From Mobula hypostoma (lineage: Eukaryota): 64,000 bases of DNA. A program made the position numbers and the translations under genes. The stretch is from positions 20,460,001 to 20,524,000 of the forward strand of contig NC_086106.1 in assembly GCF_963921235.1 (NCBI RefSeq). Direction: 5' to 3'. The notes beneath the pieces were generated by a model. That model did no database searches, was not told the DNA's origin, and worked only from the letters and a program-made list of their open reading frames with translations. The first letter of the stretch is position 1; the number at the start of each line of letters is the position of its first letter. This document shows positions 3,632 through 64,000 of the stretch, piece after piece.

Positions 3632-3742
3632 CAATTGCACATTGCACATTTGAATGGAGACGTAACGTAAATGTTTTTACTCATCATGTATATGAAGGAT
3701 GTAAGTAATAAGGTTAATTAAATTTAATCCAGTTCAATTCAA
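3632..3742 (+). mobile_element. 3' end of LINE with (TTCAA)n-type tail abutting J
   Basis: gcacattgcacatt...gaaggatgtaagtaataaggttaattaaatttaatccagttcaattcaa. The same tail is at about 23968, 41204 and 62650. Confidence 0.65.
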
Positions 3743-3781
3743 GTTACTGTGAGCGAGGTTCCTCTTTGCAGGCAAGATATT
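3741..3781 (-). pseudogene. IGHJ: IgH J pseudo-segment (cluster A, distal copy)
   Basis: Minus strand AATATCTTGCCTGCAAAGAGGAACCTCGCTCACAGTAACTT keeps GTSLTVT, but the WGxG motif is destroyed and the splice donor is replaced by a LINE tail. Preceded by an RSS. Confidence 0.75.
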
Positions 3782-3820
3782 CACACTGCTCCGTCTCTAA
3801 ATTCACCCAGTGGAGTAATT
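3782..3820 (-). promoter_or_regulatory. J recombination signal, 23-bp spacer (degenerate)
   Basis: Plus strand cacactg(3782-88), 23 nt, ggagtaatt(3812-20). Confidence 0.65.
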
Positions 3821-5138
3821 TCACTTTCCTGTCACATCCACTAATCTCAGAAAAGTGTCAACATGTCCCAGAACAACAGCAGCCGCTTGCTCGATTTCTA
3901 TCCGAAGCTTCGAACTTGGATCTTCCTGGCCTTGTCATAAAGGGGCTATGGTAACGGACCCAAATGCAAGACACAGGCACTGCAGTACTAGCTACAGGCC
4001 AAGTTTTATCAAGAAAGCAAGGGGAGTTCGGAAGAAACGACGCTGGACATGGACAAAGGCCCTGGACGAGGCAAAGACACCGGGCCTGGTCTAGGACTAA
4101 GACTTGGAAAAGGAACTTGGAACTACGTGCCTGGGCTAGGACTCCAAGCCAGAGACTGGACAGGGACCAGCAACATGGGTCTTGATTCGGGCTCGGACCC
4201 CAGATCTATGCGAGGACAAGACGTGGCTACAGGACTGGACGTGGTTGCAGGACTGGATGTGGAACTCCTGTACAGGACGAGGCACATTGCAATGACGAGA
4301 ACGCAAAGCCTTGACATGTACAAGACCAGGTTCTTGGACTAGGCTTGGATAAAACGGGGTTCTTGGACGTGGCTTGAGCTAGACGAGGGATCCCTGGACT
4401 CAACGAGGGAACTCCTGGTCTGGACGGGGGAACTCCTCGAATGCAGGACGAGGCTCTTGGACGAGGTTTGCCTCGGCTCTTGGACTCGGCTTGGTTAGGC
4501 TCTTGGGTACTGAGCAGGGACACCTCCGTGGAGCGCCGGGCCAGGGAACTTTCTAGGGGCAGGGCCGGGACCATTTCCAGGACGCATGGTCGGGACACTT
4601 TTTCAGACCCAGTGCCGGGACGCTTTTAGTATTCAGGACCGTGTTGCTTTCTAAGATGCAGGGCCGGGATGACTGCCGGGGATACTAGCTGAGGGAAACG
4701 CCGAGGTAAACTGCGAGGCAGTTGTCGGGGATTCTGATGGGGAGGATCCAGCACAGGACGAGAACACGAAGTCTTGACTTGGACAGGACTGGAGCACGGC
4801 ACCTGGTACCTGGAACACAGGAACACAGAACACAGAGCCGGGACCCCTCCTTGAGGACAGGACGTAGGGCCGGGACTCGTACACGGAACGCCGAGCCAGG
4901 ACCTCTCCTTGGATACAGGACTTAGGGTCGTGGCTCTGCACAGAGTCAAGACCCCTCTGTGTGAACAGGACATAGGGTCGGGACTCTTCTGGACAAGGAA
5001 CACTAAACACAAAGAGACACTTCCAAAGTTAACAATAGATTGTTCCTTATCTTGACGCGACAAGGCTCCAGTCTCTCTCCGGTGGGTTAACTTGAAGGGC
5101 AATTCTGACGGAGTGGCAGAAGAAGGTGGTAGACGAAG

Positions 5139-7520
5139 AGCAAATCTACAGGGAAATAGCAAGCAACTGCAGGAAACATAAACTTGTGGTGGTAGGTGAT
5201 TTTAATTTTCCATATATTGATTGGGACTCCCATACTGTTAGGGGTCTAGATGGTTTGGTGTTTGTAAAATGTGTTCAGGAAAGTTTTCTAAATCAATTTA
5301 TAGAGGGACCAACTAGAGGGAATGCAATATTGGATCTCCTGTTACGAAACGAGTTAGGACAAGTGATGGAAGTCTGTGTAGGGGAGCACTTTGGTTCCAG
5401 TGATCATAACACCATTAGTTTCAACTTGATCATGGACAAGGATAGATCTGGTCCTAGGGTTGAGATGCTTAACTGGAAGAAGGTCAAATTTGAAGAAATG
5501 AGAAAGGATCTAAAAAGCGTGGATTGACACAAGTTGTTCTCTGGCAAGGATGTGATTGGTAGGTGGGAAGCCTTCAAACGAGAAATTTTGAGAATGCAGA
5601 GTTTGTATGTTCCTGTCAGGATTAAAGGCAAAGTGAATAGGAATAAGAAACCTTGGTTCTCAAGGGATATTGCAACTCTGATAAAGAAGAAGAGGGAGTT
5701 GTATGACATGTATAGGAAGCAGGGAGTAAATAAGGTGCTTGAGGAGTATAAGAAGTGCATGAAAATACTTAAGAAAGAAATCAGGAGTGCTAAAGGAAGA
5801 GATGAGGTTGCATTGGCAGTCAAAGTGAAGGATAATCCAAAGAGCTTTTACAGATATATTAAGAGCAGAACGATTGTAAGGATAAAATTGGTCCTCTTGA
5901 AGATCAGAGTGGTCGCCTATGTGCGGAACCAAAGGAAATGGGGGAGATCTTAAATAGGTTTTTTTGCATCTGTATTTCCTAAGGAAATTGGCATGAAGTC
6001 TATGGAATTAAGGGAAACAAGTAGTGAGATCATGGAAACTCTACAGATCGAAAAGGAAGAGGTGCTGCTGTCTTGAGGAAAATTAAAGTGGATAAATCCA
6101 CGGGACCTGACAGGGTGTTCCCTCGGACCTTGAAGGAGACTGGTGTTGAAATTGCAGGGGCCCTGGCAGAAATATTTAAAATGTCGCTGTCTACAGTTGA
6201 GCTGCCGGAGGATTGGAGAGTGGCTCATGTTGTTCCGTTGTTTAAAAAAGTATCGAAAAGTAATCCGGGAAATCATAGGCTGGTAAGTTTAACGTCGGTA
6301 GTTATTGGAGGGAGTACTAAGAGACAGAATCTACAAGCCTTTGGATAGACAGGGACTTAATAGGGAGAGTCAACATTGCTTTGTGCGTGGCAGGTCATGT
6401 TTGACCAATCTACCGGAGTTTTTCGAGGAGGTTACCAGGAAAGTGGATGAAGGGAAGGCAGTGGGTATTGTCTACATTGACTTCAGTAAGGCCTTTGACA
6501 AGGTCCCGCATGGGAGGTTAGTTAGGAAAATTCAGTCGCTGGATATACATGGAGAGGTGGTAAATTGGATCAGTCATTGGCTCAATGGAAGAAGCCAATG
6601 AGTGGTAGTAGAGAATTGCTTCTCCGAGTGGAGGCCTGTGACTGGTGGTGTGCCACAGGGATCAGTGCTGGGTCCATTGTTATCTATATCAATGATCTGG
6701 ATGATAATGCGGTAAATTGGATCAGCAAATTTGCTGATGATACAAAGATTGGAGGTGTAGTAGACAGCGAGGAAGGTTTTCAGAGCCTGCAGAGGGACAT
6801 GGACCATCTGGAAAAATGGGCTGAAAAATGGCAGATGGAGTTTAGTGCAGACAAGTGTGAGGTATTGAACGTAGGAAGGACAAACCAAGGTAGAACATAC
6901 AGGGTTAATGGTAAGAGTATAAGAGCTGGAATGTTATGATGAGGTTGTGTAAGGCATTGGTGAGGCCGAATCTGGAGTATTATGATCAGTTTTGGTCACC
7001 AAATTACAGGAAGGATATAAATAAGGTTAAAAGAGAGCAGAGAAGGTTTACAAGGATGTTGCCAGGACTTGAGAAACTCAGTTACAGGGAAAGGTTGAAT
7101 AGGTTAGGACTTTATTCCATGGAGCGTAGAAGAATGAGGGGAGATTTGATAGAGGTATATAAAATTATGATGGGTATAGATAGAGTGAATGCAAGCAGGG
7201 TTTTTCCACTGAGGCAAGGGGAGAAAAAAAAACAGAGGACATGGGTTAAGGGTGAGGGGTGAAAAGTTTAAGGTGAACATTAGTGGGGACTTGTTCACAC
7301 AGAGAGTGGTGGGAATATGGAATGAGCTGCCAGACGAGGTGGTAAATACGGGTTCTTTTTTAACATTTAAGAATAAATTGGACAGATACATGGATGGGAG
7401 GTGAATGGTGAATGGTCCGTGTGCAGGTCAGTGGGACTGGGCAGAAAAAGGGTCGGCACAACCAAGAAGGGCCATAAGGCCGGTTTCTGTGCTGTAGTTT
7501 CTATGGTTCTATGGTTCTAT
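5139..7520 (+). mobile_element. CR1 LINE, 5'-truncated (end of endonuclease + RT), many frameshifts
   Basis: ORFs with [31 protein letters not shown]. (ctatggtt)n tail. GAAG flanks both ends (5135-38, 7521-24). Confidence 0.92.
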
Positions 7521-9840: not shown

Positions 9841-9892
9841 TAGGAAAGATATTCACAGTGCTCCGTCTCCCCATTCACTCAATACAGCGACT
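9841..9892 (-). pseudogene. IGHJ: IgH J stub (13 nt) with intact-looking RSS23 (cluster A)
   Basis: Plus strand cacagtg 9854-60, 23 nt, acagcgact 9884-92. Coding AATATCTTTCCTA is then fused to LTR sequence. Confidence 0.7.
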
Positions 9893-10204: not shown

Positions 10205-10268
10205 AGTTTCTGTTCAGCTCCCCATCACCGTGGTGGAGATCACAGTGCTTCACTGCAGGTCAAAATCA
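10205..10268 (-). other. IGHD: IgH D segment (8 nt, 10233-10240, ATCTCCAC on minus) flanked by two 12-bp-spacer RSSs
   Basis: Plus strand agtttctgt-12-caccgtg | gtggagat | cacagtg-12-tcaaaatca. Confidence 0.85.
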
Positions 10269-10493: not shown

Positions 10494-11010
10494 TGTCATG
10501 CTGGATCAACAGATGCAAAGGCAATCGTACCACGAATACAATAACACACGTAATTCTTTTTCAAACCTTTATTCTTTACTGACAGCATGCTATGGGGGAA
10601 GTTACAGACTGATCTCCCAAAAGAGCACCGAATTGCACAATTCTACGCAATTTATGACATTGATCAGGAATCAGGAAATCTTACGATTACGGGTTTAGAT
10701 AACATTGGAGTCATTTCAATTCCATGCTAAGATACAGTTAGATGTAAATATAATAATTGGTTAGTTAGTTACGATTATTCAAAGCCAAAGTTATAGTCAT
10801 ACCTTGAGATGCTTCTGCAAGTTCGGATAGTTCTTTTTTTGAACCTTTGCCTATCTTTAGAGAACAATGACAAGTACGCCACCGGTTGCTGGGTAAAGTT
10901 TCTTTTTGACTGTTAAAAACAGTAAGATAAGGCGCCCACAAGGTGATCGATCATTAGTTAATCATTTTTCTTGGTCTGTACCCCTATTTTCCTAGCCTTT
11001 CACTCCATCA
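10494..11010 (-). repeat. ERV 3' LTR (517 bp)
   Basis: Homologous to 16295-16901. AATAAA on minus at 10568-73; preceded by PPT. Confidence 0.9.
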
Positions 11011-12358
11011 ATCCGCCGTTTTATCATACCATAATGACCAATCAAATGCGGGGACGAGAAGGGCATCATCAATCTTTCCATGAAAAGCTGGCAGCCAGCA
11101 TTTAGGCAGGTCATTATCAGACGGCAAGCAATAATTATAACAATGAGAATAATCAGCCCATGCTGGAAATACGACTCCCGTGATCCTCCGTCCAACCATC
11201 CTAACCAGCCATCCTCCTTCCCTGAACCTTGCTTGATATCATTCAATAGTTTCGTAATAGACTGAATGGCATGGGTCACGTCGTATAATTCGTCAGTAAC
11301 ATGGGTGATACATTTGTCTCCGACTATGGCGCATACCCCTCCCTGTTGGGTCAACAGATAATCCACAGCATACCTGGTTTGCTGTGCGTAGAGTCGTAAC
11401 TCCACCAATTCTCTGTTAACAGCCTCCATGCCTTCCACCGTACTGTTTCCCAGTGCCGCCAGCCCACCAATGAGGCTGTTGCGGTTCTTCGTAGCTATGG
11501 CTCCTGCCGAACTCCCTAGAGAGAGAGTGCTCAGAAACCCATAGCCCAGAGAGGAGCCCAGAGTAACAGGATTCCTCCAGTCAACACAGAATTCCTTACT
11601 CACAGCTCGAACTGTCAGTCGCCGTCGAACGTGGGCAACCTGGGAGCAGTGATCAGAAAGTGGTCCAATCGTTCCTGCTGCAAGGAGGTTAGGCAGAATG
11701 GTGGTAGATGCAGTATAGGTACCGTTGAAGAGTAACATATATCCTGATTTGGCCCTGTAAAATCTATTTTTGTAACTCAATATTTTATCATAGCACAACT
11801 CCTCCTGTGGATGAAGGGAGGAGTATGCAAAAGTCCCGGAACCTGTCGACACATGAGTCCCATTGCAATGCCCACATACATACTGAATTCCCTTAAAGAG
11901 CGGCACGCGTTGTTCGTGGATACATTTGCAAGACAATATTCCCTGGTTTATCCTACTTCGGTGGTCCGGACAATAACTCTTCAGGCAAAGTATCTCCGGG
12001 GGAACCCTGACAAGGAAGCACCCCTCCCCCTTCTTCTGCAAAACAGAAGGGATAATCCCCGACGCCCTCGCTAGTAATCTCACCACCCACTCTCTTAAGA
12101 CACTTTCCCCTGATCCCCCTTACATTCTGCCCCTGATTTAACCTCCACTATTAAGTCATGTTCCACCCAATTTAGCCCTGATGGGTTAGCAACAAACAGT
12201 GCTTCTACAGATTGTACCAAATGATAACATGCTGTACGGTTACCATACAAATGCATATGAGTCTTATAAAATAAATTGTCCTCCAGGCTTAATACGGTGG
12301 GGGCAATTATAACAATGAAAAGTCCAATAATAGTCTTTAGTCCACATGCGGAGCCCAT
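10992..12358 (-). pseudogene. env: ERV envelope (signal peptide, SU, TM); stop at 12095-97 and frameshift near 12086
   Basis: Signal-like MGSACGLKTIIGLFIVIIAPTVLS. 364-codon open stretch with CGHC, RRR, a fusion-peptide-like segment, ISD-like QQTRYAVDYLLTQQGGVC-X6-C and TM GLIILIVIIIAC. Confidence 0.88.
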
Positions 12359-12389
12359 CGTTTGCAATCACTTAGGTGGATCCAGCGGC

Positions 12390-14040
12390 TGTGCCCTGAA
12401 ACCTTAATAGTCGTCGGTATTTGCAGTAGTATCTGGAATGGCCCTTTCCACCCGTATCCAAGCTTGGAGTGCTCCCAATCCCTGATCAGTACCGATTCTC
12501 CAATTTTCAACTCCGGCCTCTCCGTTCCCTAACGTTCAGGCTCCTGAAGGGTATTCTGTACTTGGGAGTGAAGAAACTTTGGAGAGAATGTTAGTTCGCT
12601 AAAGTACTTCTGCAATCCGTCCCCCATGACATTTAGATCAATTTTGGTGCGAGACTACATGTCAGCGGCCTATAGGGTCCTTCCAGGACGCCCATAAACA
12701 ATTTCAGCTGCAGATACACCTGTAATGGAGTGTGGAGTAATTCTCATATGGTATAAAGCCAGCGAAAGGACCTTCAGCTAACTCAGTCCGGTTTCGGACA
12801 TTAACTGAGACAGCTTGTTTTTCAGGGTGTCGTTGGCCCGTTTAACTATTCCTGCAGCCTTCGGGTGGTAAGTACAATTCAACTGCGGTTCGATGCGCAG
12901 CACCTCACATAACTTTTTATTTACATTTCCTACAAAGTGAGGGCTATTATCCAAACTCATTTGTCTGGGCACTCTGTAAGTAACAACCTTACCACCGTAG
13001 AAGCTTTATTATTGGCGGTGGGAGAGGCTTCAATCCATTTACCGAACACATCTACAATCACTAAACAGTGCTAATAACAGTGTACGCGCAGTAGTTCCAT
13101 GAAAGCAAGCTGAATACATTCAAAAGGGCCACTTGGCAAGGAGTTTTCCCTTTCCTGCGTTTGTCTTTTGGCAAATAAAACAGGCTTATATATTTGCAGC
13201 AGCCTCCTCCATCCAGCGGTGCCACCATGTGCGGAGCAAAATATTACTCATTCCCACCTGGCCGAGGAGGGTGTCCGTAAGCAAGCAATTGAGCAATATA
13301 GGCAGCAATGCATCAGGAATACAAAATGGCCAATTGGGGTATGCCAGAGGCCTGTCGACACCGAACACGTACATCCGTGTGTCTTCCAAAGTTGATTTTC
13401 TGAATCAGGAGCGTCCTCCTGGAATTTTTGAACTGTAGCCCTGTCTGGAGAGCCCGGCGCTCGTGGTGTTTTAGTCAGGGTGAAGGCCAATCGATCTGCA
13501 GTCAAAACAGTAGCAGTTGCATCCTGCGCAGCCTGCTTGGCTGCCAAATCAGCCCTGCTATTCCCTTTAGTCACTGCAGATTCGTCTTTTAGATGACCCG
13601 AACATTTAATAATGGCTAACGAGATCACGTATCCCCAGGAATGCAGAGCATTCAGAAGCGTATTGGTGTCCCGCACGTTTGAGGTTTCTGACGGGCTTGC
13701 CAGTAGAAGTTCATCTACGTACTGTATTACCGTAGATCCCCCGAGAAATTGTAAATCTCTAAGCTGCCAATGTAATATACGTGAGAAAATGGTGGGGGAG
13801 TGCACGAACCCTTGGGATAACCTAGTCCAAGTGTACTGCTGATCTTGAAAGGTAAATACAAAAAGGTACTGTGACTCATGAGCAAGGGGTATTGCAAAAA
13901 ATGCATGCTGCAGATCTACTATAGTAAAGACTTGGGAGTCCGGTGGAATGTTGCTTAAGATCGTAGCGGGATTAAGGTCCACCGGATGTATAGGCTGTAC
14001 AATTTCATGCTTTTCTGTGTGAAGTCTCTGCCGTGACTCC
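12390..14040 (-). pseudogene. pol: ERV pol relic: RT core, RNase H tail, integrase (protease and part of RT deleted)
   Basis: VDLQHAFFAIPL...YTWTRLSQGFVHSP...QYVDELLLAS; KCSGH...GNSRADLAAK; DNSPHF...YHPKAAGIVKRANDTLK. Confidence 0.88.
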
Positions 14041-15437
14041 GGAAATGCTCAACTGCCCTTTTCATAGCCTGCTTGTTCCTATCGGATCATTCCATATCAG
14101 TTCTAAAAGCCTTGGACACATCCTCGGGGGACACTGCAATATCATCGAATTAAACCTGGGCGAAGTATTGCCGGCATTATAAGCGGCATCTCCAGCGTCG
14201 GTTGCATAAACGGAGCAGAAGCGTTCCCAAAAATCGCAGCCATCCTCTCCAGCCTTTGGGCGGCATTCGAGGACCTTAACGATGTCTACGGGGTGCTGCA
14301 AAGCTTTCTTTAGAGCCTTCTTTATTTTATCCACCGGTTCTGCGGGTGGGGTTGCCGTGCAAAAGGACTCCCAATTGGCATGATTCCCCATAGCTCCCCT
14401 CCATTTTTCCTGCTCACTGGTCGTAAGAGCCATGCAGCTCAAGCTAAGAAGATCATTGGGAGTTCCCTCAAACATTTGGATTGTGCCAATCATAAATACC
14501 TCAGGATCATTTTTCCTGTTGGGGGCCTGATTCACGATCATACCCATCTCTTGGGGCTTCCAAGGACTATAAACCTGCATGGTAGCCGCCTGGTCCGGCT
14601 GTCCTACCCTAGGATTGGGAACGGTCCCGTTGGAAAATTGCCCCGCGATTCCTCTCCCCCTGAGTCCGGGGACCCACTCTGGATTGTCATCGTCAATACC
14701 AGAGTCATGATCAGTATTCGTCTCAGGGTCTATCAGGGGTCTGTCTCCCACCGAAAGTTTTCGCCGCCTCCTAGCCTGGCGCCTATTACTTCCCCTTCGC
14801 CGAAGTTGTCCTCTGGCTCGGGAGGCTATTGGTTATTCGGACGCGGCTGGGGATGGACAGTGGTAACGTTATATGCGGGTGCGGGGCCGTGGGCTGGGTT
14901 CGAATGTGCTGCTCAGTCTCATTATCATTAAAGAGCATGGGCAGTCAGACAGGTCAAGAGGTTTCCTCAGTTTTACCTTTGCCGGCTTCATCCTCAAGCT
15001 TCCGTTTATCCTTAGCCCACCTATCTCTTGTCTTCCTATCCTGTTTTTCCTTATTCTATTTATAATCCTCACACCGTCCGTTTAATATCTCCCACAGTTT
15101 CGAATTTCTTTCATTGTCACATACACTTATCCCTCTGCGACGTGCGTTATGCTCCCAACTACTTTGCTTGGATCTATTATTTAGTTCTTCTGCCGTTTCT
15201 CTCTAATTGGACATTAAAACCTTCCATTTTTGTCCTGTATTACGTTTCCAAATTGCTTCTTCTGCCTTTAGATATTTATCTATATCCCAGGTTCCACCCA
15301 GAGCCCAAATTTCACTCTCCAACTTCTCATTTAATCATGCTGATAAACTTCAGTAATCATTCTCTCTCACTGGGTCATCGCTTACAAAGTTTAAACAATG
15401 GCGTTTTGATTGCAGACTTATCTAATGGTTGCCCCAT
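14041..15437 (-). pseudogene. gag: ERV gag relic
   Basis: Starts ATG GGG CAA (MGQ, myristoylation-type start) at 15437 with early stops. ORF 14062-14751 (VYSPWKPQEM...APNRKNDPEVF). Position lies between PBS and pol. Confidence 0.65.
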
Positions 15438-16269
15438 ACTTCCTAGTCGGGTGGGTCAGCCGCCTCCTTTTCTCATTCCCACTTCAGGTTCCTGACCTCC
15501 GCATGGGTGATTTCCCCTCTTAACAATTGGTCTAAGGCTGGATGCTGATACTTCAGAGTGCGGCTTTACCACCTTAAGATCTATAACCCCTACTCCCCGT
15601 CATTCTTGTGCCGTGTCTCTCTGCACCCACTTCAAGGTCCTGACCTTCGTGTGGGAGATTTGCCCTCTTACCAACCGGCCTAAGGCAGAGTGCTGAGACA
15701 GGCAAATTGTCACAAGTGTACCCCGAAATGTATTTACAGCATCCGGATAAATTGCAGGGGAGTGCCACTTCCCCGTGTTTGGCCAAACGTCCGCTCTACC
15801 CTGTGGTGGTCAATTTACTGCGCTACACACCCCGGACCCCCACGCCAATGACAATGGTTACCATTTCCAAAATTTAGTAGGTTAGAACCTCCAACCCGCT
15901 GACCAATTTGCTGTAACACAGTCAAAGAAAAATACAATAGATCACTACCAACGATCCGCTGCCCAATTTGTTAGCACCGGCAGGCTTTGATACTCGCAAT
16001 ACTTCGTCGGGGACTCTAACAACTTACCTTACCTTACCTTACACTACGTCGGGGACACTAACCCCTCGTTTAACCTGTGGTATTCGGACGATCCTCAACT
16101 CTGGTTTAGGAAGGAGTCCATCAGAGGATTACATACCAGACAAAGGGATCGTCAAGGTGGGCAATTAATGAGAGAGGTCAAGGTAACTCTTACCTTGTGG
16201 GTCCACCCGTCTCAGATCACCGCCACCGAGTCGAACTCTGACGCCGCCTCACGGGGATGCCTCGTCTTG

Positions 16270-16291
16270 GACTCCTGGCTTTGGCTCGCCA
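16270..16291 (-). promoter_or_regulatory. Primer binding site, tRNA-Arg(ACG)-like
   Basis: Plus strand GACTCCTGGCT(TT)GGCTCGCCA equals the 3' end of vertebrate tRNA-Arg(ACG) with a 2-nt insertion, 3 nt from the 5' LTR. Confidence 0.8.
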
Positions 16292-16294
16292 AAT

Positions 16295-16901
16295 TGTCCT
16301 ACTGGATCGACAGGTGCAAAGACATCGTACCACAAATACACTAACAGACGTAATTCTTTTTCAAACCTTTATTTTATACTCATAGCATGCTATGGGGGAA
16401 GTTACAGACTGATCTCCCAAAAGAGGCAGTCCAGGCACTGCCCCTGAATTACTCAATTCTCCACAATTTATAACATTCATCAGGTCGCAGGAAATCTTAG
16501 GATTGCAAGTTTAGATAATACTAGAATCATTTCAATTACATGCAAAAATACAATTATATGTAATATAATCATTGGCTAAATAGTTATAATTATTTTAAGC
16601 CAATGCTAGCCCATCAGTTCATCATTCAGACACCTTCCACTTTTCCCCAGAACAGTCTAGCCCTTACACTATACTTCCCATATTTAGCTATACCTTGAGA
16701 TGCTTCTGCATGATCAGATAGTTCTTTACTTGACCCTTTGCCTATCTTTATAGAACAATGACTGGCACGTCACCGGTTGCCGGGTAAAGCTTCTATTTGA
16801 CTGTCCAAAACAGTAAGCTAAGGCGCCCACAAGGTGATTGACCATTGGTTAATCATTGTTCAGAGTCTTTACCCCTATTTACCTATCCCTTCACTCCATC
16901 A
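16295..16901 (-). repeat. ERV 5' LTR (607 bp)
   Basis: Begins TGATGGAGTG on minus, followed by the PBS. Confidence 0.9.
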
Positions 16902-17456: not shown

Positions 17457-17495
17457 GGTTTTTGTCTCGGTCTACTCCCGATCTCTCTCACTGTG
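17457..17495 (-). promoter_or_regulatory. V RSS, perfect consensus, 23-bp spacer
   Basis: Minus strand CACAGTG-23-ACAAAAACC. Confidence 0.97.
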
Positions 17496-17793
17496 TATCT
17501 CGCACAGTAATAGGTGGCCGTGTCGTCCAGTCTCAGGTTGTTCATTTGCACATAAACTGTGTTGCTGTCCTTGGAAACCTCGAATCTGCCTTCGACTCCA
17601 GGAGCGTATTTTTTGTTACCGTTAGCCCATACAGCGGCCACCCATTCCGGCCCTTTCCCTGAGACCTGTTTCACCCAGTACATGTCATAGCTGTTGAGGC
17701 TGAACCCACTGACTGCACAGGTCAGTCTGTGGGACTGTCCGGATTTTACGATCGCCGACTCGGGCTGTTTCAGCACGATATCAGACTGCACGC
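17496..17793 (-). CDS. IGHV: IgH variable exon (IgW-like VH), cluster A copy 1, open frame
   Basis: TTGACAG acceptor, then GVQS|DIVLKQPES...TC...YWVKQ...EWV...DTATYYCAR, directly followed by an RSS. IgW versus IgM assignment is from recalled framework style only. Confidence 0.95.
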
Positions 17794-17904
17794 CTGTCAA
17801 CAAAAGAAGAGCAGAAATTGATAAAAATGTTCCACGAGCATAGATTCACAAAGCCTGCGAGAAACAGTCTGCCTCGGGTAGATAATAAATTGTGGGGCAG
17901 AGAC

Positions 17905-17980
17905 CTGGAAGGCAAAACAGGAGGAGACAGAAATAAGGAATGCCCCATATCTTGCTGAGCACTGAATCCGACTTCGACAT
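17905..17980 (-). CDS. IGHV: VH leader exon
   Basis: ATG at 17980 gives MSKSDSVLSKIWGIPYFCLLLFCLP+G, then a GT donor. The phase-1 111-nt intron joins in frame to the V exon. Confidence 0.7.
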
Positions 17981-20089: not shown

Positions 20090-21180
20090 AAATGTTCTGC
20101 TATAGTTCCAGGTACTTTCAGTCTTCGCAGTTTTAAAAAAAAACTTCTCGTGTATCTCGTGTAAAAATGCTTGGCGGCAATTTTATTTGCTAACATTTAT
20201 ACTGATTGACACGAACGATAACGGGATATACATTGTAGCTTCATTTAGCACACTCCTTCCAGAGGCGCAAAACCTTGTAGGGTTTGGACGCTTAGGTCCC
20301 TCGATGACGCTGACGGCCTGGTGCTCTGGCGCTTCGTAGGATCACTTATGCCATAGACGTCAATCCGTAGAGGCTGCGCTCCGTGCTATAGACCGGTCCT
20401 CTAAGTCCGTGGGCTGGGGTTCAGCACAGTGCAACAGCCATGACAAGTGAAAAAAGGACGAAGAGTTCCTCATATGAAGTGACACACTGAAGAAGGACTT
20501 AGCAATCTAACACCACGACAAAACTTCTGCTGAAGCTCTAGATCTTCGCATTTTTTAAAAAAATCTGTTTTATCCTCTTGATATCCTCTCTTTCATCTTA
20601 AATCAACGTGGCCGACGATTTCACAGCTCTACCTTGGTATTAAAGATATTATATATATCACCAGCTCGACCGACAGGCTTTATTGCTCAAGAAAATGCAA
20701 TTCTAGTTTGTCTAAGCTCCCCCTCATATATCATACATGCCAATCCAGAAAACATACAGTTGACCCACTTCTGTGCCATATCCAAAACCTCACATCCTTC
20801 CTAAAATGTGACGAGAACGGTTCGCAATACTGAAAATATGGTCGAGCCAAAACTTCATATAGCTGCAAAAGTATTTGCAAATGCTCAATGGCAGATGCGA
20901 AAACGGGATATATGCTTCAGGCTTCATTTAACACACTCCTCCTAGAGATTTGGAAGCTTGCGTGCCCCAGTGACCCTGCGGGCCTTGTGCTCTGGCGCGT
21001 GGTAGGTTCGCTCATACCATGCAGGTCAAATTGTAGAGGTTGCGCTAAAAGCGATACACCGGTCCTCTAGATCCTGGGGCTGGGGTTTAGCTCAAGGCTA
21101 ACAGCCCCGACAAGTGAAAAAATGGACGAAAGTGACCCTCATATGATGTGACACACTGCGGAAGCAATCGCTGATTTGGG
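20090..21180. repeat. Old ~0.7-kb tandem duplication containing decayed CR1 sequence
   Basis: Two related units (20230-20520 versus 20900-21180); fuller pair at 58330-59750. The gtgacccacttctgtgccatatcc block is the reverse complement of the CR1 RT 3' region. Confidence 0.55.
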
Positions 21181-22299: not shown

Positions 22300-22749
22300 T
22301 GTATTGCATTGTGTTTAGTTTAAGACTAGAGATAAACGGGGCTTTGCAATGTGCGGCCTCCAGTGAGGGGGATGGTGTTCGTTATTGTGTGACCCAGAGC
22401 GAGAGACTTCGCGGGCTTTTGTTCAGGAGAAGATGGAGAGAGGAGATTCCAGAAAGGGAAGTCGTAGACTGCAGGACAGAGTTGACCGGGAATGTGGTTA
22501 GGAGTCGACGACGTCCGGGTGAAGTCAATGGAGAATGAACAGACAGGAAAACAGCGAGCTGCATCGTGCGCCTCAGACTGCTTTATTAAACTGGGCCCTT
22601 TTTCTTTACTAACCCTAGAGTTTCGAGGTTCTGATTCGTAACAGAGGAACACATCACGCAGCATCCACACAAACAAGACTTCCCAAGTTGTACTGGCCGG
22701 AGTCTTTAGTCCCCTAGACTAACGCCACTGGCCGAACCTGAGGGTTAAT
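22300..22749. mobile_element. Probable solo LTR
   Basis: The copy-2 homologue 60967-61498 has TGTAA...TTACA termini. Absent from the A-cluster flank. Confidence 0.45.
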
Positions 22750-25565: not shown

Positions 25566-25569
25566 AGTG

Positions 25570-47635: not shown

Positions 47636-47687
47636 TAGGAAAGATATTCACAGTGCTCCGTCTCCCCATTCATCCAATGCAGCTACT
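47636..47687 (-). pseudogene. IGHJ: IgH J stub with RSS23 (A copy 2)
   Basis: cacagtg 47649-55, 23 nt, gcagctact 47679-87; 13-nt coding stub fused to LTR. Confidence 0.7.
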
Positions 47688-47999: not shown

Positions 48000-48063
48000 A
48001 GTTTCTGTTCAGCTCCCCATCACCGTGGTGGAGATCACAGTGCTTCACTGCAGGTCAAAATCA
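48000..48063 (-). other. IGHD: IgH D segment (48028-48035) with 12/12 RSSs (A copy 2)
   Basis: Identical to 10205-10268. Confidence 0.85.
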
Positions 48064-48288: not shown

Positions 48289-51200
48289 TGTCATGCTGGA
48301 TCAACAGATGCAAAGGCAATCGTACCACGAATACACTAACACACGTATTTCTTTTTCAAACCTTTATTCTTTACTGATAGCATGCTATGAGGGAAGTTAC
48401 AGACTGATCTCCCAAAAGAGCCCCGAATTACACAATTCTCCGCAATTTATGACATTGATCAGGAATCAGGAAATCTTACGATTACGGGTTTAGATAATAT
48501 TAGAGTCATTTCAATTCCATGCTAAGATACAGTTAGATGTAAAAATAATCATTGGTTAGTTAGTTATGATTATTAAAAGCCAAAGTTATAGTCATACCTT
48601 GAGATGCTTCTGCAAGTACGGATAATTCTTTTTTTGAACTTTTGCCTATCTTTAGAGAACAATGACAAGTACGCCACCGGTTGCTGGGTAAAGTTTATTT
48701 TTGACTGTTAACAACAGTAAGATAAGGCGCCCACAAGGTGATCGATCATTAGTTAATCATTTTTCTTGGTCTGTACCCCTATTTTCCTAGCCTTTCACTC
48801 CATCAATCCGCCGTTTTATCATACCATAATGACCAATCAAATGCGGGGACGAGAAGGGCATCATCAATCTTTCCATGAAAAGCTGGCAGCCAGCATTTAG
48901 GCAGGTCATTATCAGACGGCAAGCAATAATTATAACAATGAGAATAATCAGCCCATGCAGGAAATACGACTCCCGTGATCCTCCGTCCAACCATCCTAAC
49001 CAGCCATCCTCCTTCCCTGAACATTGCTTGATATCATTCAATAGTTTCGTAATAGACTGAATGGCATGGGTCACGTTGTATAATTCGTCAGTAACATGGG
49101 TGATACATTTGTCTCCGACTATGGCGCATACCCCTCCCTGCTGGGCCAACAGATAATCCACAGCATACCTGGTCTGTAGTGGGTAGAGTCGCAACTCCAC
49201 CAATTCTCTGTTAACAGACTCCAGGCCTTCCACCGTACTGTTTCCCAGTGCCGCTAGCCCACCAATGAGATAGTTGCGGTTCTTCGTAGCTATGGTTCCT
49301 GCCTAACCCCCTAGAGAGAGAGTGCTCTGAAACCCATAGCCCAGAGAAGAGCCCAGAGTAACAGGATTCCTCCAGTCAACACAGAATTCCTTACTCATGG
49401 CTCGAACTGTCAGCCGCCGTCGAACGTGGGCACCCTGAGGGCAGTGAACAGAAAGTGGTCCAATCGTTCCTACTGCAAGGAGGTTAGGCAGAGCCGTGGT
49501 AGCTGTAGTATAGGTACCGTTGAACAGTAACATATGTCTTGTTTTGGCCCTGTAACAGGTAATTTTGTAACTCAATATTTTATCATACCACAAGTGGTCC
49601 TGTGGATACAGGGAAAAGTATTCAAAAGTTCCGGAACCCGCCGACACGAGTCGCATTGCAATATCCACGTGCATACTGACTTCCCTTAAAGAGTGGCACA
49701 CATTGTTCGTGGATACATTTTCAAGAGAATATTCCCTGGATTATCCTACATCGGCGGTCCGGACAATGTCTCTTCAGGCAAGGTATCTCCGGCGGATCCC
49801 TGTCAAGGACGCACCCCTGCCCCTTCTCCCGCAAAACAGAAGGGATAATTCCCGACACTCTCGCCAGTAATCTCACCACCCACTCTCATAAGACACTTTC
49901 CCCTGACACCCCTTACGTTCTGCCCCTGATTTTTCCTCCACTATTAAGTCATGTTCCGCCCAATTTAGCCCTGATGGGTTAGTAAAAAATAATGCTTCTA
50001 CGGATTGTACCAAAGGATAACATGGAGTACAGTTATCATGCAAATGAATATGAGTCTTATAAAATAAATTGTCCTCCCGGCTTAATAACGTGGGGGCAGT
50101 TATAACAGTGAAAAGTCCTATAATAGCCTTCCGTCCACATGCGGAGCCCATCGTTCGCAATCACTTAGGTGGATCCAGCGGCTGTGCCCTGGAACCTTAA
50201 TGGCCGTCGGTGTTTGCAGTAGGATCTGGAATGGCCCTTTCCACCAGGGTCCAAGCTTGGAGTGCTCCCAATCGCTAATCAGTACCGAATCTCCAGTTTT
50301 CAACTCCGGCCACTGCATTCCCGGACGTTCAAGCTCCTTAAGGGTATTCTGTTCTTGGGAGTGCAGAAACTTTGGAGAGGTTGTCAGTCGGCTAAAGTAC
50401 TTCTGCAATCCGTCCCCCATGACATTTAGATCAATTTTAGTGCGAGACTACATGTCAGTGGCCTATAGGGTCCATCCAGGACGCCCATAAACAATTTCAG
50501 CTGCAGATACACCTGTAATGGAGTGTGGAGCAATTCTCATATGGTATAAAGCCAGCGAAAGGACCTTCAGCTCACTCAGTCCGGTTTCGGACATTAACTG
50601 AGACAGCTTGTTTTTCAGGGTGTCGTTGGCCCGTTTCACTATTCCTGCAGCCTTCGGGTGGTAAGCACAATGAAACTGCAGTTCGATGCGCAGCACCTCA
50701 CATAGCTTTTTATTTACATTTCCGACAAAGTGAGGGCTATTATCCAAACATATTTGTCTGGGCACTCCGAATGTTGGTATAATCTCTGTAAGTAACAACC
50801 TTACCACCGTAGAAGCTTTATTATTGGCGGTGGAAAAGGCTTCAATCCATTTACCAAACACATCTACAATCACTAAACAATGCTTATAACAGTGTACTCG
50901 CGGTAGTTCCATGAAACTAAGCTGAATACATTCAAAAGGGCCACTTGGCAAGGGGGTTTTTCCCTTTCCTGCGTTTGTCTTTTGGCAAATAAAACAGGCT
51001 TATATATTTGCAGCAGCCTCCTCCATCCAGGGGTGCCACCATGTGCGGAGCAATATATTACTCATTCCCACCTTGCCGAGGTGGGTGTCCGGAAGCAAGC
51101 AATCGAGCAATATAGGCAGCAATGCATCAGGAATACAAAATGGCAAACTGGGGTATGCCAGAGGACTGTCGACACCGAACAGGTACATCCGTGTGTCTTC

Positions 51201-54200
51201 CAAAGTTGATTTTCTGAATCAGGAGCGTCCCCCTGGAATTTTTGAACTGTAGCCCTGTCTGGAGTGCCCGGCGCTCGTGGTGTTTTAGTCAGGGTGAAGG
51301 CCAATCGATCTGCAGTCAAAACAGTAGCAGTTGCATCCTGCACAGCCTGCTTGGCTGCCAAATCGGCCCTGTTATTCCCTTCAGTCACTGCAGATTCGTC
51401 TTTTAGATGACCCGAACATTTAATAATGGCTAACGAGATCACGTATCCCCAGGAATGCAGAGCATTCAGAAGCGTATTGGTGTCCTGCACGTTTGAGATT
51501 TCTGACGGGCTTGCCAGTAGGACGTCATCTACGTTAGAGCCCCCGAGAAATTGTAAACCTCTAAGCTGCCAATGTAATATACGTGAGAACATGATGGGGG
51601 AGTGCACGAACCCTTGGGTAACCTAGTCCAAGTGTACTGCTGATCTTGAAAGGTAAATGCAAAAAGGTACTGTGACTCATGAGCAAGGGGTATTGCAAAA
51701 ACGCATGCTGCAGATCTACTATAGTAAACACTTGGGAGTCCGGTGGAATGTTGCTTAAGATCGTAGCGGGATTAAGATCCACCGGATGTATAGGCTGCAC
51801 AATGTCATGCTTTTCTGTGTGAAGTCTCTGCCGTGACTCCGGAAATGCCCAACTGCCCTTTTCATAGCCTGCTTGTTTCTATCGGGTAATTCCATATCAG
51901 TTCTAAAAGCCTTGGACACATCTTCGCGGGACACTGCAATATCATCGAATTAAACCTGGGCGAAGTATTGCCGGCATTATAAGCGGCATCTCCAGCGTAG
52001 GTTGCATAAACGGAGCAGAAGCGTTCCCAAAAATCGCAGCCATCCTCTCCAGCCTTTGGGCGGCATTCGAGGACGTTAGCCATGTCTACGGGTGCTGCAA
52101 AGCTTTCTTTAGAGCCTTCTTTATTTTATCCACCGGTTCTGCGGGTGGGGTTGCGGTGGAAAAGGACTCCCAATTGGCATGATTCCCCATAGCTCCCCTC
52201 CATTTTTCCTGCTCACTGGTCGTAAGAGCCATGCCGCTCAAGCTAAGAAGATCCTTGGGAGTTCCCTGAAACATTTGGATAGTGACAATCATAAATACCT
52301 CATCATCATTTTTCCTGTTGGGGGCCTGATTCACGATCATACCCATCTCTTGGGGCTTCCAAGGAGTATAAACCTGCATGGTAGCCGCCTGGTCCGGCTG
52401 TCCTACCCTAGGATTGGGAACGGTCCTGTTGGGAAATTGCCCCGCGATTCCTCTCCCCCTGAGTCCGGGGACCCACTCTGGATCGTCATCGTCAATACCA
52501 GCGTCATGATCAGTATCCGTCTCAGGGTCTATCAGGGGTTTGTCTCCCACCAAAAGTTTTCGCCGCCTCCTAGCCTGGCGCCTATTACTTCCTCTTCGCC
52601 GAAGTTGTCTTCTGGCTCGGGAGGCTATTGGTTATTCGGACGCGGCTGGGGTTGGCCAGTGGTAACGTTATATGCGGGTGCGGGGCCGTGGGCTGGGTTC
52701 GAATGTGCCATACCTCCTGCTGCTCAGTCTCATTATCATTAAAGAGCATGGGCAGTCGGACAGGTCAACAGGTACCTCAGTTTTACCTTTGCCGGCTTCA
52801 TCCTCAAGCTTCAGTTTATCCTTAGCTCACCTGTCTCTTGTCTTCCTATCCTGTTTTTCCTTATTCTTTTTAAAATCCTCACACCGTCCGTTTAATATCT
52901 CCCACAGTTTCGAATTTCTTTCATTGTCACATACACTAATCCCTCTGCGACGTGCGTTATGCTCCCAACTACTTTGCTTAGATCTATTATTTAGTTCTTC
53001 TGCCGTTTCTCTCTAATTGGACATTAAAACCTTCCATTTTTGTTCTGTATTACGTTTCCAAATTGCTTCTTCTGCCTTTAGACATTTATCTATATCCCAG
53101 GTTCCACCCAGAGCCCAAATTTCACTCTCCAACTTCTCATTTAATCATGCTGATAAACTTCAGTAATCATTCTCTCTCACTGGGTCATCGCTTACAAAGT
53201 TTAAACAATGGCGTTTTGATTGCAGACTTATCTAATGGTTGCCCCATACTTCCTAGTTGGGTGGGTCAGCCGCCTCCTTTTCTCACTCCCACTTCAGGTT
53301 CCTGACCTTCGCATGGGTGATTTCCCCTCTTAACAATCGGTCTAAGGCTGGATGCTGATACTTCAGAGTGCGGCTTTACCACCTTAAGATCTATAACCCC
53401 TACTCCCCGTCATTCTTGTGCCGTGTCTCTCTGCACCCATTTCAAGGTCCTGACCTTCGTGTGGGAGATTTCCCCTCTTAACAACCGGCCTAAGGCAGAG
53501 TGCTGAGACAGGAAAATTGTCACAAGTGTACCCCGAAATGTATTTATGGCTTCCGGATAGATTGCAGGGGAGTGCCACTTCCCCTGTGTTTGGCCAAACG
53601 TCTGCTCTACCCTGTGGTGGTCAATTTACGGCGCTACACGGCCCGGACTCCCACGCCAATTACAATGGTTACCATTTCCAAAATTTAGTAGGTTAGTACC
53701 GCTAACCCGCTGAGCAATTTGCTGTAACACAGTCAAAGAAAAATACAATAGATCACTACCAACGATCCGCTGCCCAATTTGTTAGCACCGGCAGGCTTTG
53801 AAACTCGCAATATTTCGTCGGGGACTCTAACTCCTTACCTTACCTTACCTTACACTACGTCGGGGACTCTAACCCCTCGTTTAACCTGTGGTATTCGGAC
53901 GATCCTCAACTGTGGTTTAGGAAGGAGTCCATCAGAGGATTACACACCAGACGAAGGGATCGTCAAGGTGGGCAATTAATGACAGAGGTCAAGGTAACTC
54001 TTTCCTTGTGGGTCCACCCGTCTCAGATCACCTCCGCTGAGTCGAACTCTGACACCACCTCACGGGGATGCCTCGTCTTGGACTCCTGGCTTTGGCTCGC
54101 CAAATTGTCCTACTGGATCGACAGGTGCAAAGACAATCGTACCACAAATACACTAACAGACGTAATTCTTTTTCAAACCTTTATTTTTTCCTCATAGCAT

Positions 54201-54713
54201 GCTATGGGGGAAGTTACAGACTGATCTCCCAAAAGAGCAAGTCCAGGCACTGCCCCTGAATTACTCAATTCTCCACAATTTATAACATTGATCAGGTCGC
54301 AGGAAATCTTAGGATTGCAAGTTTAGATAATACTAGAATCATTTCAATTACATGCAAAAATACAATTATATGTAATATAATCATTGGCTAAATAGTTATA
54401 CTTATTTTAAGCCAATGCTAGCCCATCAGTTCATCATTCAGACACCTTCCACTTTTCCCCAGAACAGTCTAGCCCTTACACTATACTTCCCATATTTAGC
54501 TATACCTTGAGATGCTTCTGCATGATCAGATAGTTCTTTATATGACCCTTTGCCTATCTTTAGAGAACAATGACTGGCACGTCACCGGTTGCTGGGTAAA
54601 GCTTCTCTTTGACTGTCCAAAACAGTAAGCTAAGGCGCCCACAAGGTGACTGATCCTTGGTTAATCATTGTTCTTAGTCTAGACCCCTATTTACCTATCC
54701 CTTCACTCCATCA
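48289..54713 (-). mobile_element. Endogenous retrovirus, copy 2 (same insertion site as copy 1)
   Basis: LTRs at 48289-48805 and 54106-54713; flanks gctg/cctg; PBS 54081-54102; env 48787-50151; pol about 50170-51840 (integrase ORF 50463-50951); gag start 53247. Confidence 0.93.
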
Positions 54714-55268: not shown

Positions 55269-55307
55269 GGTTTTTGTGCAGTCCTACTCCCGATCTCTCT
55301 CACTGTG
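55269..55307 (-). promoter_or_regulatory. V RSS, perfect consensus, 23-bp spacer
   Basis: Minus strand CACAGTG-23-ACAAAAACC. Confidence 0.97.
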
Positions 55308-55605
55308 TGTTTCGCACAGTAATAGGTGGCCGTGTCGTCCAGTATTAGGCTGTTTATTTGCAGATAAACTGTGCTGCTGTCCTTGGAAACCTCGAATCGG
55401 CTATCGAATCTAGGAGCGTAATCTTTGTTACCGTTACCCCAGACAACGGCCACCCATTCCGGCCCTTTCCCTGAGACCTGTTTCATCCAGTACACGCCAT
55501 AGTCGCTGAGACTGAACCCACTGACCGCACAGGTCAGTCTGTGGGACTGTCCAGTCTTTACCATCTCTGACTCGGGCTGTTTCAGCACGATATCGAACTG
55601 CGCGC
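55308..55605 (-). CDS. IGHV: IgH variable exon (IgW-like VH), cluster A copy 2, open frame
   Basis: GAQF|DIVLKQPESEMVKTGQSHRLTCAVSGFSLSDYGVYWMKQ...DTATYYCAK plus RSS. Confidence 0.95.
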
Positions 55606-55717: not shown

Positions 55718-55793
55718 CTTGAAGGCAAAGCAGGAGGAGACAGAAATAAGGAATGCCCCATATCTTGCTGAGCACTGAATCCGACTTCGACAT
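55718..55793 (-). CDS. IGHV: VH leader exon, copy 2
   Basis: 76 nt, 2 differences from 17905-17980; GT donor; 112-nt intron. Confidence 0.7.
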
Positions 55794-62254: not shown

Positions 62255-62650
62255 AAAATCTTACATCCATCAATTAATCCTCAGATATCGCCTGTACCAC
62301 AGATGCTTTCTTGGACAGACTTCACGCTGAACATTACATGATAGAGCTGACACCCACCTGTACCTGGAAGGCCAAGCCATTGACTGGGGTCAAATGGAAA
62401 CAGTGCATAAAAGGCAGGACAAACAGGCTATGGGACAACTTCTTTCACCAGTCCACCAAACCGCTTAATACATGCTGACGCAAATGTATTTCTATGTTAT
62501 ATTGACATTTCTGTTGTATATAATATTAATTATAAACTACTATATTTTCACATTGCACATTTCAGCAGAGACGTAACATAAACATTTACTGCTCATGTAT
62601 ATGAAGGATGTAAGTAGAACAGTCAATTCATTTCAATTCAGTTCATTTCA
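62255..62650 (+). mobile_element. LINE 3' end with TTCAA-type tail abutting J (B copy 2)
   Basis: Duplicate of 23490-23968. 5' boundary approximate. Confidence 0.62.
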
Positions 62651-62729
62651 AGATACCGTCAGCGTGGTCCCTCCCAGTAGGCAAGATATTCACACTGCTC
62701 CGTCTCCCTGTTCACCCAATGCAGTAACT
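62650..62729 (-). pseudogene. IGHJ: IgH J pseudo-segment with RSS23 (B copy 2; best-preserved J)
   Basis: AA TAT CTT GCC TAC TGG GA GGG ACC ACG CTG ACG GTA TCT T = YLAYW-(4-nt deletion)-GTTLTVS. RSS cacactg(62691-97)-23-gcagtaact(62721-29). Confidence 0.85.
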
Positions 62730-63053: not shown

Positions 63054-63117
63054 AGTTTTTGTCCAGCTCCCCATCACCCTGGTGCATATCACGTAGCTTC
63101 ACTGCAGGTCATAATAA
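63054..63117 (-). other. IGHD: IgH D segment (63082-63089) with 12/12 RSSs (B copy 2)
   Basis: agtttttgt-12-caccctg | gtgcatat | cacgtag-12-tcataataa. Confidence 0.72.
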
Positions 63118-63433
63118 GACTCGGTCATACCCAGCCCGAAATCTAGAAGACGCCGAGCCCCCAGCATATTTATTAAACCCACCCTCAGTGCCTGGGCGTC
63201 CCACACAGCGGGTCTGATTCTCAGCCATCCCAGTCCTGAAGTGGAGATGATATAAACAACCGGACATTTCTCTGGGCTTTAACTGACAGCTCCTCCTCTG
63301 TAGTTTCGTTCGTATTGAGTCTCATTTCTAGTGGTACATGTACCCTTTCCCAGATTATGCACTCGTGATCTGATTTATATCCATGGATGCCAGGGTAAAG
63401 GCCGGCAAAAGCGAACGAAGGGCGTGATTGGAA

Positions 63434-63548
63434 GTGTTTTGTTGTAATAGTCATAGTCATAGTCATACTTTATTGATTCTGGAGGAAATTAGTTAATAGA
63501 TATGGAGGACAACCACCTTTCACACTGAGGGACGCCATGATATAGCCG
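63434..63548 (-). other. Degenerate D1 slot (B copy 2) with 49-bp LINE-tail insertion
   Basis: gtgttttgt ... cacactg-12-atatagccg; the insert 63451-63499, carrying (tcatag)n, is flanked by taatag. Confidence 0.35.
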
Positions 63549-63944
63549 TTGTGATAAACCGATGTACGATAACCTCCGTTACTCTGACTGCCTCTCAGCA
63601 CAGTCACTCTTCAGTCAAACCGCACTAGAACACGAAAGTGTCTCTGAACATTAATGTTTCTCATAGCCCGACCACATACTGACACGTGTAGACGAAGGAC
63701 CGATGCCTGACAATGTGGATCGGTGAGCCCATTCCCACTCACGGCGCTTGGCTTCGAGCTGCCGTCCGAAGTGATCTGCTGAGCCCTTCGGCCCATCCAT
63801 CCAGCATGCTTTCTGGTGAATTCACTCTGAGAACCCGCCTTCCATTGAATGGACGAACGGATATAGCCCAGAACGACCGGGGTACTGCTGTGGCGATCAC
63901 TGATGTCCTGTCCTTCAGCAGCCTAAGGATATGCGCTCTCGTTC

Positions 63945-64000
63945 GATTTTTGTCCCGGTCCAGTTCCGGTCTCTCTCAGTGTGCCTCTCGCACAGTAATA
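63945..64000 (-). CDS. IGHV: 3' end of VH (YYCARG) with RSS23; rest beyond window
   Basis: Minus strand TATTACTGTGCGAGAGG-CACACTG-23-ACAAAAATC. Confidence 0.85.

Follow-up and report, generated by a model that had tools for sequence, protein, structure and literature searches.

What use could an animal make of antibody variable (V) genes that are open and carry perfect recombination signals when every joining (J) segment beside them is broken and no constant (C) exon follows? The question is raised by a 64,000-nucleotide stretch of the genome of the lesser devil ray, Mobula hypostoma (C40:20460001-20524000; hereafter "the window," whose internal positions run from 1 to 64,000, other coordinates being those of chromosome C40 unless noted), which holds a tandem array of immunoglobulin (Ig) heavy chain (IgH)-like cassettes. 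An initial annotation of this DNA, made from its letters alone, suggested that the cassettes might donate V segments to chimeric Ig-V/T cell receptor (TCR) delta chains, to a distant J-C, or to gene conversion. Having searched the whole 3.48 Gb genome, we find that the array lies in the TCR alpha/delta locus and that one of its two cassette types (A-type) has V genes whose signals fit the diversity (D) segments of TCR-delta. We conclude that the A-type V genes are likely to be V donors for TCR-delta, of the VH-delta/TAILV type, which came from a captured IgW minicluster after loss of its J and C. It is thus the first of the three suggestions that is supported, by locus context and by constraint, no junction having been observed.

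Position in the TCR Alpha/Delta Locus

All relevant features of the window (V, D, J, and recombination signal sequences [RSSs]) are on the minus strand. The initial annotation counted four clusters in tandem, each with a doubtful first D segment (D1). The four cassettes are indeed present, but they are of only two types, A and B, each of which occurs twice because of a direct segmental duplication of about 37.8 kb (roughly 2300-26000 versus 39779-64000; mostly 94–98% identical), and the doubtful D1 was dropped after a strict 12/23 scan between V and D2 recognised none in any of the four. As first described, two V genes are open and have perfect 23-RSSs; these belong to cassettes A1 and A2, each of which has a leader, a GT..AG intron, and a V exon (Table 1). 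Perfect signals of the form CACAGTG-23-ACAAAAACC occur twice in the window against an expectation by chance of 0; the two share heptamer and nonamer and differ by 5 changes in the spacer. The V exons of A1 and A2 match Pfam V-set with E = 5e-17 and 4e-15, respectively; CDR1 of the A-type is of the SYDMY or DYGVY kind, and the leader has MSKSDSV.

The initial annotation saw no TCR segment inside the window, which is correct, and it pointed to the flanking assembly, where the TCR-delta segments begin about 57 kb downstream on the same strand. Over the 210 kb examined downstream on the minus strand, V-type 23-RSSs run on down to 20416519 and are followed, at C40:20402880-20403690, by D-delta 1 (12-GGACTGGGGTAC-23), D-delta 2 (12-TACGGGACG-23), and a J that reads LIFANGTTLIVEP and has a 12-RSS and the donor GTAAGT; J-delta segments, at least seven in number, extend down to 20380462. 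Exon 1 of the delta constant gene (TRDC; 20372277-20372531) scores 22.6 bits with Pfam C1-set, and its best match among 1.84 billion representative proteins is the "T cell receptor delta constant" of Hypanus sabinus (49% identity, E = 5e-17). This match came from an exhaustive HMMER search; a word-based homologue search gave none, and a PDB sequence search and the ESM Atlas returned "C1-set" only. The TRDC transmembrane exon (20370355-20370474; …LTVIGLRILFLKSVAFNVMMTARAWII) was missed by a regular expression for TCR transmembrane motifs and located by tblastn with stingray TRDC; it is 87.5% identical to that of H. sabinus. After TRDC comes a dense J-alpha array, made up of FGxGT-type J segments with 12-RSSs and extending from 20305238 to 20252332, and TCR alpha/delta-type (TRAV/TRDV-like) V genes are found from 21.16 Mb upward. 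A genome search with Pfam DUF1968 (TCR-alpha C) produced nothing usable. DAD1 flanks TRAC in many vertebrates; here it lies on another chromosome (C1:217253282-217255932) and is of no use as a marker.

D-delta, J-delta, TRDC, and J-alpha are thus all found in cis with the array, and the order on the minus strand is TRAV-like V (21.16 Mb and above), VH cassettes (20.96–20.42 Mb), D-delta (20.4037 Mb), J-delta, TRDC (20.3725–20.3704 Mb), and J-alpha. The IgW-type cassettes, which extend from 20.416 to about 20.96 Mb, thus occupy the end of the TCR alpha/delta V region nearest to D. A1 and A2 lie 74 and 112 kb upstream of D-delta, in joining orientation; their 23-RSSs fit the 5′ 12-RSS of D-delta by the 12/23 rule, the 3′ signal of D-delta is a 23-RSS, and that of J-delta is a 12-RSS. 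In developing gamma/delta T cells, RAG would be expected to join the 23-RSS of an A-type V to the 12-RSS of D-delta 1 or 2; the D-delta 23-RSS would then be joined to a J-delta 12-RSS with deletion of the intervening DNA, and the resulting leader-V-D-J exon would be spliced to TRDC at 20.3725 Mb. This would yield a TCR-delta chain carrying an antibody-type V, presumably expressed at the cell surface together with TCR-gamma.

The D-D-J block of TCR-delta has five same-strand paralogues, at 20.692, 20.708, 20.759, 20.826, and 20.866 Mb (C40:20692424-20866846; 70–79% identity). Most have a same-strand VH-like V a few kb upstream, the block at 20.692 Mb having none within 20 kb, and they resemble minicluster-style V-D-D-J units with no nearby C, 300–500 kb upstream of TRDC. 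With these five extra blocks, the locus may be a mosaic of minicluster and translocon organisation.

Origin of the Cassettes

The cassettes resemble the canonical elasmobranch IgW minicluster, V-D-D-J-C, of which a working example (L003, C40:18.36-18.39 Mb) lies on the same chromosome. By blastn, homology to L003 covers the promoter region, the leader, V, D2 with its 12-RSS, the D-J spacer, J, and about 5 kb of the J-C intron, at 70–79% DNA identity, and it ends before the first heavy chain constant exon (CH1). Unlike the minicluster, the cassettes have no CH exons, a dead J, no recognisable D1, a moved start codon, inserted retroelements, and a location in the TCR alpha/delta V region. The A-type V is 75% identical in amino acids to the V of the working IgW cluster, and the nearest named relatives of the window V genes are Ig heavy chain-like proteins of rays. 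The nearest V exons on C40 that are not of the VH type are only 38–39% identical, and a TRAV-type query matched none of the V genes of these VH cassettes. Judged by this homology, the cassettes are descended from a captured IgW minicluster.

The J segment of the working cluster (C40:18.384-18.394 Mb, to which the J and D relics were aligned) reads DYLGYWGGGTSLTVTS and is followed by the donor GTAAGA. Alignment to it bears out the initial finding that all six J copies of the window are broken, four having a deletion and a lost donor and two being stubs. The repeat found at the J splice donor has an independent copy at C40:20324783-20325020, which marks it as a dispersed repeat. A and B cassettes share both the 4-nt deletion and the repeat, so the death of J preceded their divergence and the growth of the array. 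What looks like a further J, at about 10025-9990, was considered and rejected, the alignment showing it to be conserved D-J spacer. The reported absence of CH exons between the clusters also stands: tblastn of the window with IgW CH1, TRDC, and related C-domain proteins gave a best E of 0.18 and no C exon, Pfam found no Ig domain in 20 minus-strand open reading frames (ORFs) between cassettes, and the DNA homology agrees. Among the best 150 candidates of a genome-wide C1-set scan, no exon scored between 19.82 and 21.85 Mb. Neither a functional J with FGxG/WGxG and a splice donor nor C1-set CH exons, both of which define a canonical IgW minicluster, are found in the cassettes.

The D-H2 relics of the A cassettes had been described as having 12/12 signals near consensus, which is apt for the heptamers (CACTGTG and CACGGTG) but generous for the nonamers, with 3 mismatches on the 5′ side and 2 on the other. 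The 3′ 12-RSS (10205-10232 and 48000-48027) is identical at 28/28 positions, spacer included, to L003:8777-8804, a cluster 2 Mb away, in surroundings only about 75% identical; the match could be due to chance (p about 0.05 for the A lineage), to past selection, or to conversion. The relics are probably not used, since this 3′ 12-RSS has no 23-RSS partner: J-H is dead, and the 5′ signals of D-delta and the signals of J-delta are all 12-RSSs.

These data are consistent with the following history. An IgW minicluster V-D-D-J-C would once have been copied into the TCR alpha/delta locus; its C exons would have been lost and its J destroyed by the 4-nt deletion and by insertion of the repeat at the splice donor. 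The remnant would then have split into A and B types and undergone tandem amplification, giving nine or more two-cassette units in the interval 20.43–20.65 Mb. In these, the A-type V would have been kept as a working segment (promoter region, leader, intron, open exon, and consensus 23-RSS), while the D-H and J-H relics would be decaying leftovers and the B-type V has mostly been broken.

Maintenance of the A-type V Genes

The main rival to donation of V segments to TCR-delta is that the array is inert debris, i.e., that dead IgW remnants were amplified within the TCR locus and that the open V exons and RSSs are leftovers of recent amplification. Decay is indeed widespread in the array: J, C, and the B-type V have all been affected, the canonical start codon of the A-type leader is out of frame, and no rearranged product was seen in the contigs described below. 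Furthermore, dead B-type V genes still have RSSs with only 1–2 mismatches, so that a good RSS alone is no proof of use. Nor do the V exons change more slowly than their flanks. Comparing four A-type copies at the DNA level, we counted 232 substitutions and 11 indels in 1208 sites of flanks and intron (none of the 11 indels being a multiple of three) and 55 substitutions in 296 sites of V exon.

Against debris, those 296 sites contain no indel and no stop. With about 5% of random substitutions giving a stop, the neutral expectation is roughly 2.7 indels and 2.8 stops, and the joint neutral probability of finding zero of both is, as a rough figure, about 0.004. A genome protein search located nine A-type V exons (20446794, 20477498, 20515310, 20532902, 20554690, 20577357, 20596468, 20616909, and 20638424), five of which were judged from the protein search tables; all nine are full length without stops at 77–92% amino-acid identity to A1, i.e., at up to 23% divergence. 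By contrast, most B-type V genes in the same units are cut off near residue 40 or have stops, although two B-type copies of the array may still be open. The pairwise ratio of nonsynonymous to synonymous substitution rates (dN/dS), from few sites, is mostly 0.2–0.5 in the frameworks and often above 1 in the complementarity-determining regions (CDRs), and relative to a more distant V type (20.416–20.425 Mb) the V exon is 21–24% diverged versus 34–39% for the flanks. Splice sites, heptamer, and nonamer are preserved as well, and since J was dead before A and B split, these V genes have stayed open for long without a J or C of their own. The signal sits in the kind of change and not in its rate. 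The initial annotation had proposed comparing the decay of V with that of neutral flanks; the rates are equal, yet the V exons have acquired no disabling mutation. Open V exons, lack of indels, framework constraint, preserved signals, and spliced RNA together weaken the debris explanation, which we regard as unlikely.

The leader has changed in a manner that preserves a reading frame. All A-type genes have the canonical IgW start codon in the wrong frame (17977-17980 and 55790-55793, compared with the equivalent site of L003), but 30 nt upstream of it they have acquired an ATG where the IgW cluster has GTG, and this gives a plausible 29-residue signal peptide in all four A-type copies compared, 10 residues longer than with the canonical start. 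The NCBI models of sister copies, P0013 and P0014, use this upstream ATG as well.

Transcription

Expression was assessed in four small runs from one study (X2–X5; 89–241 million letters), using contigs, not raw reads, placed on window positions 16000-19500 at 90% likeness or more. That these runs are RNA is indicated by splicing and by run size, a small size that makes genomic DNA an unlikely source. They contain the TRDC exon, 0.76–1.00 of its words being present. In contigs from X4, X2, and X5, precisely the 111 nt of the leader intron are missing (17793-17903, CT..AC on the plus strand), and a further contig from X3 runs from V into an A2-like leader. A-type V genes that are sister copies or alleles of those in the window are therefore transcribed, and their transcripts are spliced. 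The search of RNA that had been proposed at the outset thus yielded spliced leader-V contigs of the A-type and no joined J or C.

Several of these observations weigh against donation to TCR-delta. The spliced contigs are 94–96%, not 100%, identical to A1 and so derive from sister copies or alleles and not from the window genes themselves, and they could be sterile germline transcripts. No contig of X2–X5 continues from an A-type V into D-delta, J-delta, or TRDC; when the junction sequences at the V border of the RNA contigs were compared with the D and J segments, none matched a TCR-delta D or J, and one X5 contig runs into the RSS and is germline. P0013 and P0014 likewise translate through the RSS into flanking DNA, i.e., they are unrearranged. 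The leader is without the canonical IgW start frame and depends on the new upstream ATG, and the TATA-like box is weakened (TATTTGAAC versus TATTTAAAC). The overall substitution rate of the V exon equals that of the flanks, among the four copies and between A1 and A2 alike, and two recent pairs have dN/dS values near or above 1, again on few sites.

A last point of this kind is that deep X3 contigs ending at the V/RSS border run into IgH-type J (…CTTGACTACTGGGG; …DYWG), as one would expect if the V genes instead served antibody genes, whether by long-range joining to IgW D-J-C at 18.4–19.8 Mb or as donors for gene conversion. The V genes are of IgW type, and IgW clusters with 6–7 C1-set exons lie 0.65–2.1 Mb downstream, several on the same strand. 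However, these X3 contigs carry the CDR2 and framework 3 of a canonical IgW V and match the A-type in framework 3 only, which identifies them as ordinary antibody transcripts. Long-range joining would also have to skip the nearer, RSS-compatible D-delta and delete the whole TCR delta/alpha J-C region. As for conversion, a donor could dispense with leader, splice sites, and RSS, yet precisely those parts have been kept: pseudo-V donors of the chicken type are characterised by having no leader, promoter, or RSS, and the A-type genes retain leader, intron, splice sites, and a perfect RSS. We therefore consider service to antibody genes very improbable. Least credible of all is that each V gene is joined only to the D-H2 relic of its own cassette, forming dead-end V-D joints as decoys or as cassettes being silenced, because although the relic has CAC-type heptamers, a 5′ 12-RSS fitting the V 23-RSS, and a 3′ RSS identical at 28/28 positions to that of the working cluster, V and D now lie on either side of a 6.1 kb retroelement, the 5′ nonamer has 3 mismatches, and such joining has no selective value and leaves the intact V frames unexplained.

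Since the NCBI models read through the RSS, the public annotation of the array is misleading. One of P0013 and P0014 also fuses two V genes into an "immunoglobulin gamma-1 heavy chain-like" protein.

Comparison with Known Systems

Donation of the A-type V to TCR-delta would not reveal a new kind of system, the VH-delta/TAILV class being already known. Four of five features of that class are present: IgH V lineage, position and orientation in TCR alpha/delta, RSS fit, and no Ig C. For the fifth, transcripts, there are spliced leader-V contigs in runs that hold TRDC, these being contigs of which none spans a V-D-delta junction. In PMC12227049 (its references 25 and 33), IgH-like V segments are reported from the TCR-delta loci of two species, nurse shark (TAILV) and elephant shark; the same paper describes clusters of IgM, IgW, and IgNAR as linked to TCR alpha/delta, both in sharks and in a stingray. 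Like TAILV, the devil ray V genes are of IgH type with a 23-RSS and no C of their own, upstream of D-delta, J-delta, and C-delta. Unlike TAILV, they are attached to the wreck of an IgW unit, of which a D-H2 relic, the dead J-H, and a portion of the J-C intron survive; they are arrayed in tandem, in a batoid, as nine or more two-cassette units; and they appear here in no contig that continues into C-delta, whereas for nurse shark TAILV, use with TCR-delta has reportedly been shown by transcripts.

VH-delta genes are also found in the TCR alpha/delta loci of frog, birds, platypus, and coelacanth (PMC3457774, PMC5278385, PMC12227049). The array resembles them in having antibody-clan V genes in cis with TCR-delta D-J-C, near the D-delta end of the V region. 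VH-delta genes in those vertebrates are used in place of V-delta and are single V segments with no relics of Ig-type D or J, their origin from an IgH unit having been deduced from phylogeny. In nurse shark, trans-rearrangement of IgM and IgW V from Ig clusters to TCR-delta is cited in PMC12227049 (its references 26 and 27) and mentioned in PMC5931798. The array shares with this process an Ig-type V on the TCR-delta chain (in the ray, as predicted) and Ig and TCR loci on one chromosome; it differs in that its V genes are resident in the TCR locus, 57–250 kb from D-delta. For resident V genes with no working Ig partner segments, ordinary deletion in cis suffices. A literature search found no publication on the antigen-receptor loci of Mobula.

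The route by which antibody-type V genes enter the TCR locus has so far been deduced from trees, in sharks, frogs, birds, and monotremes. Here, a fossil of the IgW donor is attached to each V, which shows capture of an entire minicluster, early loss of J and C, and only then retention and multiplication of V. What the devil ray would add to the known cases is a visible donor wreck, a documented order of events, and tandem amplification in a batoid; the array also supplies V genes to seek in the gamma/delta T-cell repertoires of rays. One could envision, although we propose this only tentatively, that devil rays have derived a large, diversifying repertoire of antibody-type V for TCR-delta from one captured and amplified IgW minicluster (at least nine intact A-type V genes, with CDRs changing faster than frameworks), the intermediate steps from Ig to TCR being still readable in the DNA. 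If so, the array would be one of few in which such steps (a dead J, a lost C, a D reduced to a relic, and a start codon that has moved) have left their record on the way from an Ig cluster to a TCR V.

Further Features of the Window

Coordinates of the individual features are collected in Table 1. The 6.1 kb long terminal repeat (LTR) retroelement in both A cassettes has a reverse transcriptase ORF and a weak envelope-like ORF (GP2 HR1-HR2). Its 217-nt LTRs are 86% alike within one element and 98% alike between the two duplicated elements, so the insertion is old and predates the duplication of the unit. A different LTR retrotransposon, with reverse transcriptase, RNase H, and integrase ORFs, occupies about 33000-39300 on the plus strand within the unique spacer between the duplicated units, and a long interspersed nuclear element (LINE) with a reverse transcriptase ORF is present at 41520-43800 in the second unit only.

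Table 1. Features of the array within the window.
Feature	Position	Strand	Basis
A1 leader exon, MSKSDSVLSKIWGIPYFCLLLFCLPG, phase 1; starts at ATG upstream of the canonical IgW start	17905..17980	-	
A1 leader-V intron, GT..AG, 111 nt	17794..17904	-	spliced out in runs X4, X2, X5, joint 17792>17904
A1 V exon, open, IgW-type VH, ends YYCAR	17496..17793	-	
A1 perfect 23-RSS, CACAGTG-23-ACAAAAACC	17457..17495	-	
A2 leader exon	55718..55793	-	
A2 V exon, open, 77% amino-acid identity to A1, ends YYCAK	55308..55605	-	
A2 perfect 23-RSS, CACAGTG-23-ACAAAAACC	55269..55307	-	
A1 D-H2 relic, nonamer-12-CACTGTG / ATCTCCAC / CACGGTG-12-ACAGAAACT	10205..10268	-	
A2 D-H2 relic, identical to that of A1	48000..48063	-	
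J-H stub of A1, heptamer and 13 nt of J, then LINE	9841..9860	-	
J-H stub of A2, cut by LINE after 13 nt	47636..47655	-	
J-H relic, 4-nt deletion in WGxG, in-frame stop, donor replaced by dispersed repeat	3741..3788	-	
J-H relic of A2, 4-nt deletion, no splice donor	41203..41250	-	
J-H relic of B1, 4-nt deletion, donor lost, 1-nt insertion	23968..24016	-	
J-H relic of B2, 4-nt deletion, no splice donor	62650..62697	-	
B1 V end, last ~16 nt and 23-RSS, heptamer CACAGTC	25226..25280 (RSS 25226-25264)	-	
B2 23-RSS (CACACTG...ACAAAAATC) and last 17 nt of V	63945..64000 (RSS 63945-63983)	-	
B1 D relic, decayed heptamers CAACGTG / CAGGGTG	24391..24412	-	
B2 D relic, decayed heptamers	63075..63096	-	
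IgW J-C intron remains after cassette B1	21136..23599	-	blastn to working IgW cluster
LTR retroelement, first copy, between A1 V and its D relic	10794..16901	-	self-comparison, ORFs
LTR retroelement, second copy, between V and D of cassette A2	48589..54713	-	self-comparison

In B1, the rest of the V gene has been replaced by the 3′ end of a LINE; in B2, a 4-nt insertion shifts the V frame, and the gene extends past the end of the window. Pieces of the IgW J-C intron similar to that after B1 are found at 561-3024, 39806-40503, and 59704-62364.

Two observations concern the IgW clusters themselves. In L003 (L003:8800-8860, C40:18392800-18392860), V is fused to D in the germline (…YYCAR-TGGAGC-CACGGTG-12-ACAGAAACT) and J is unjoined. 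In another IgW cluster region (C40:18934158-18936353), there is a same-strand series of four V-like pieces spaced by about 640 bp, three of them consisting of the first half of a V only.

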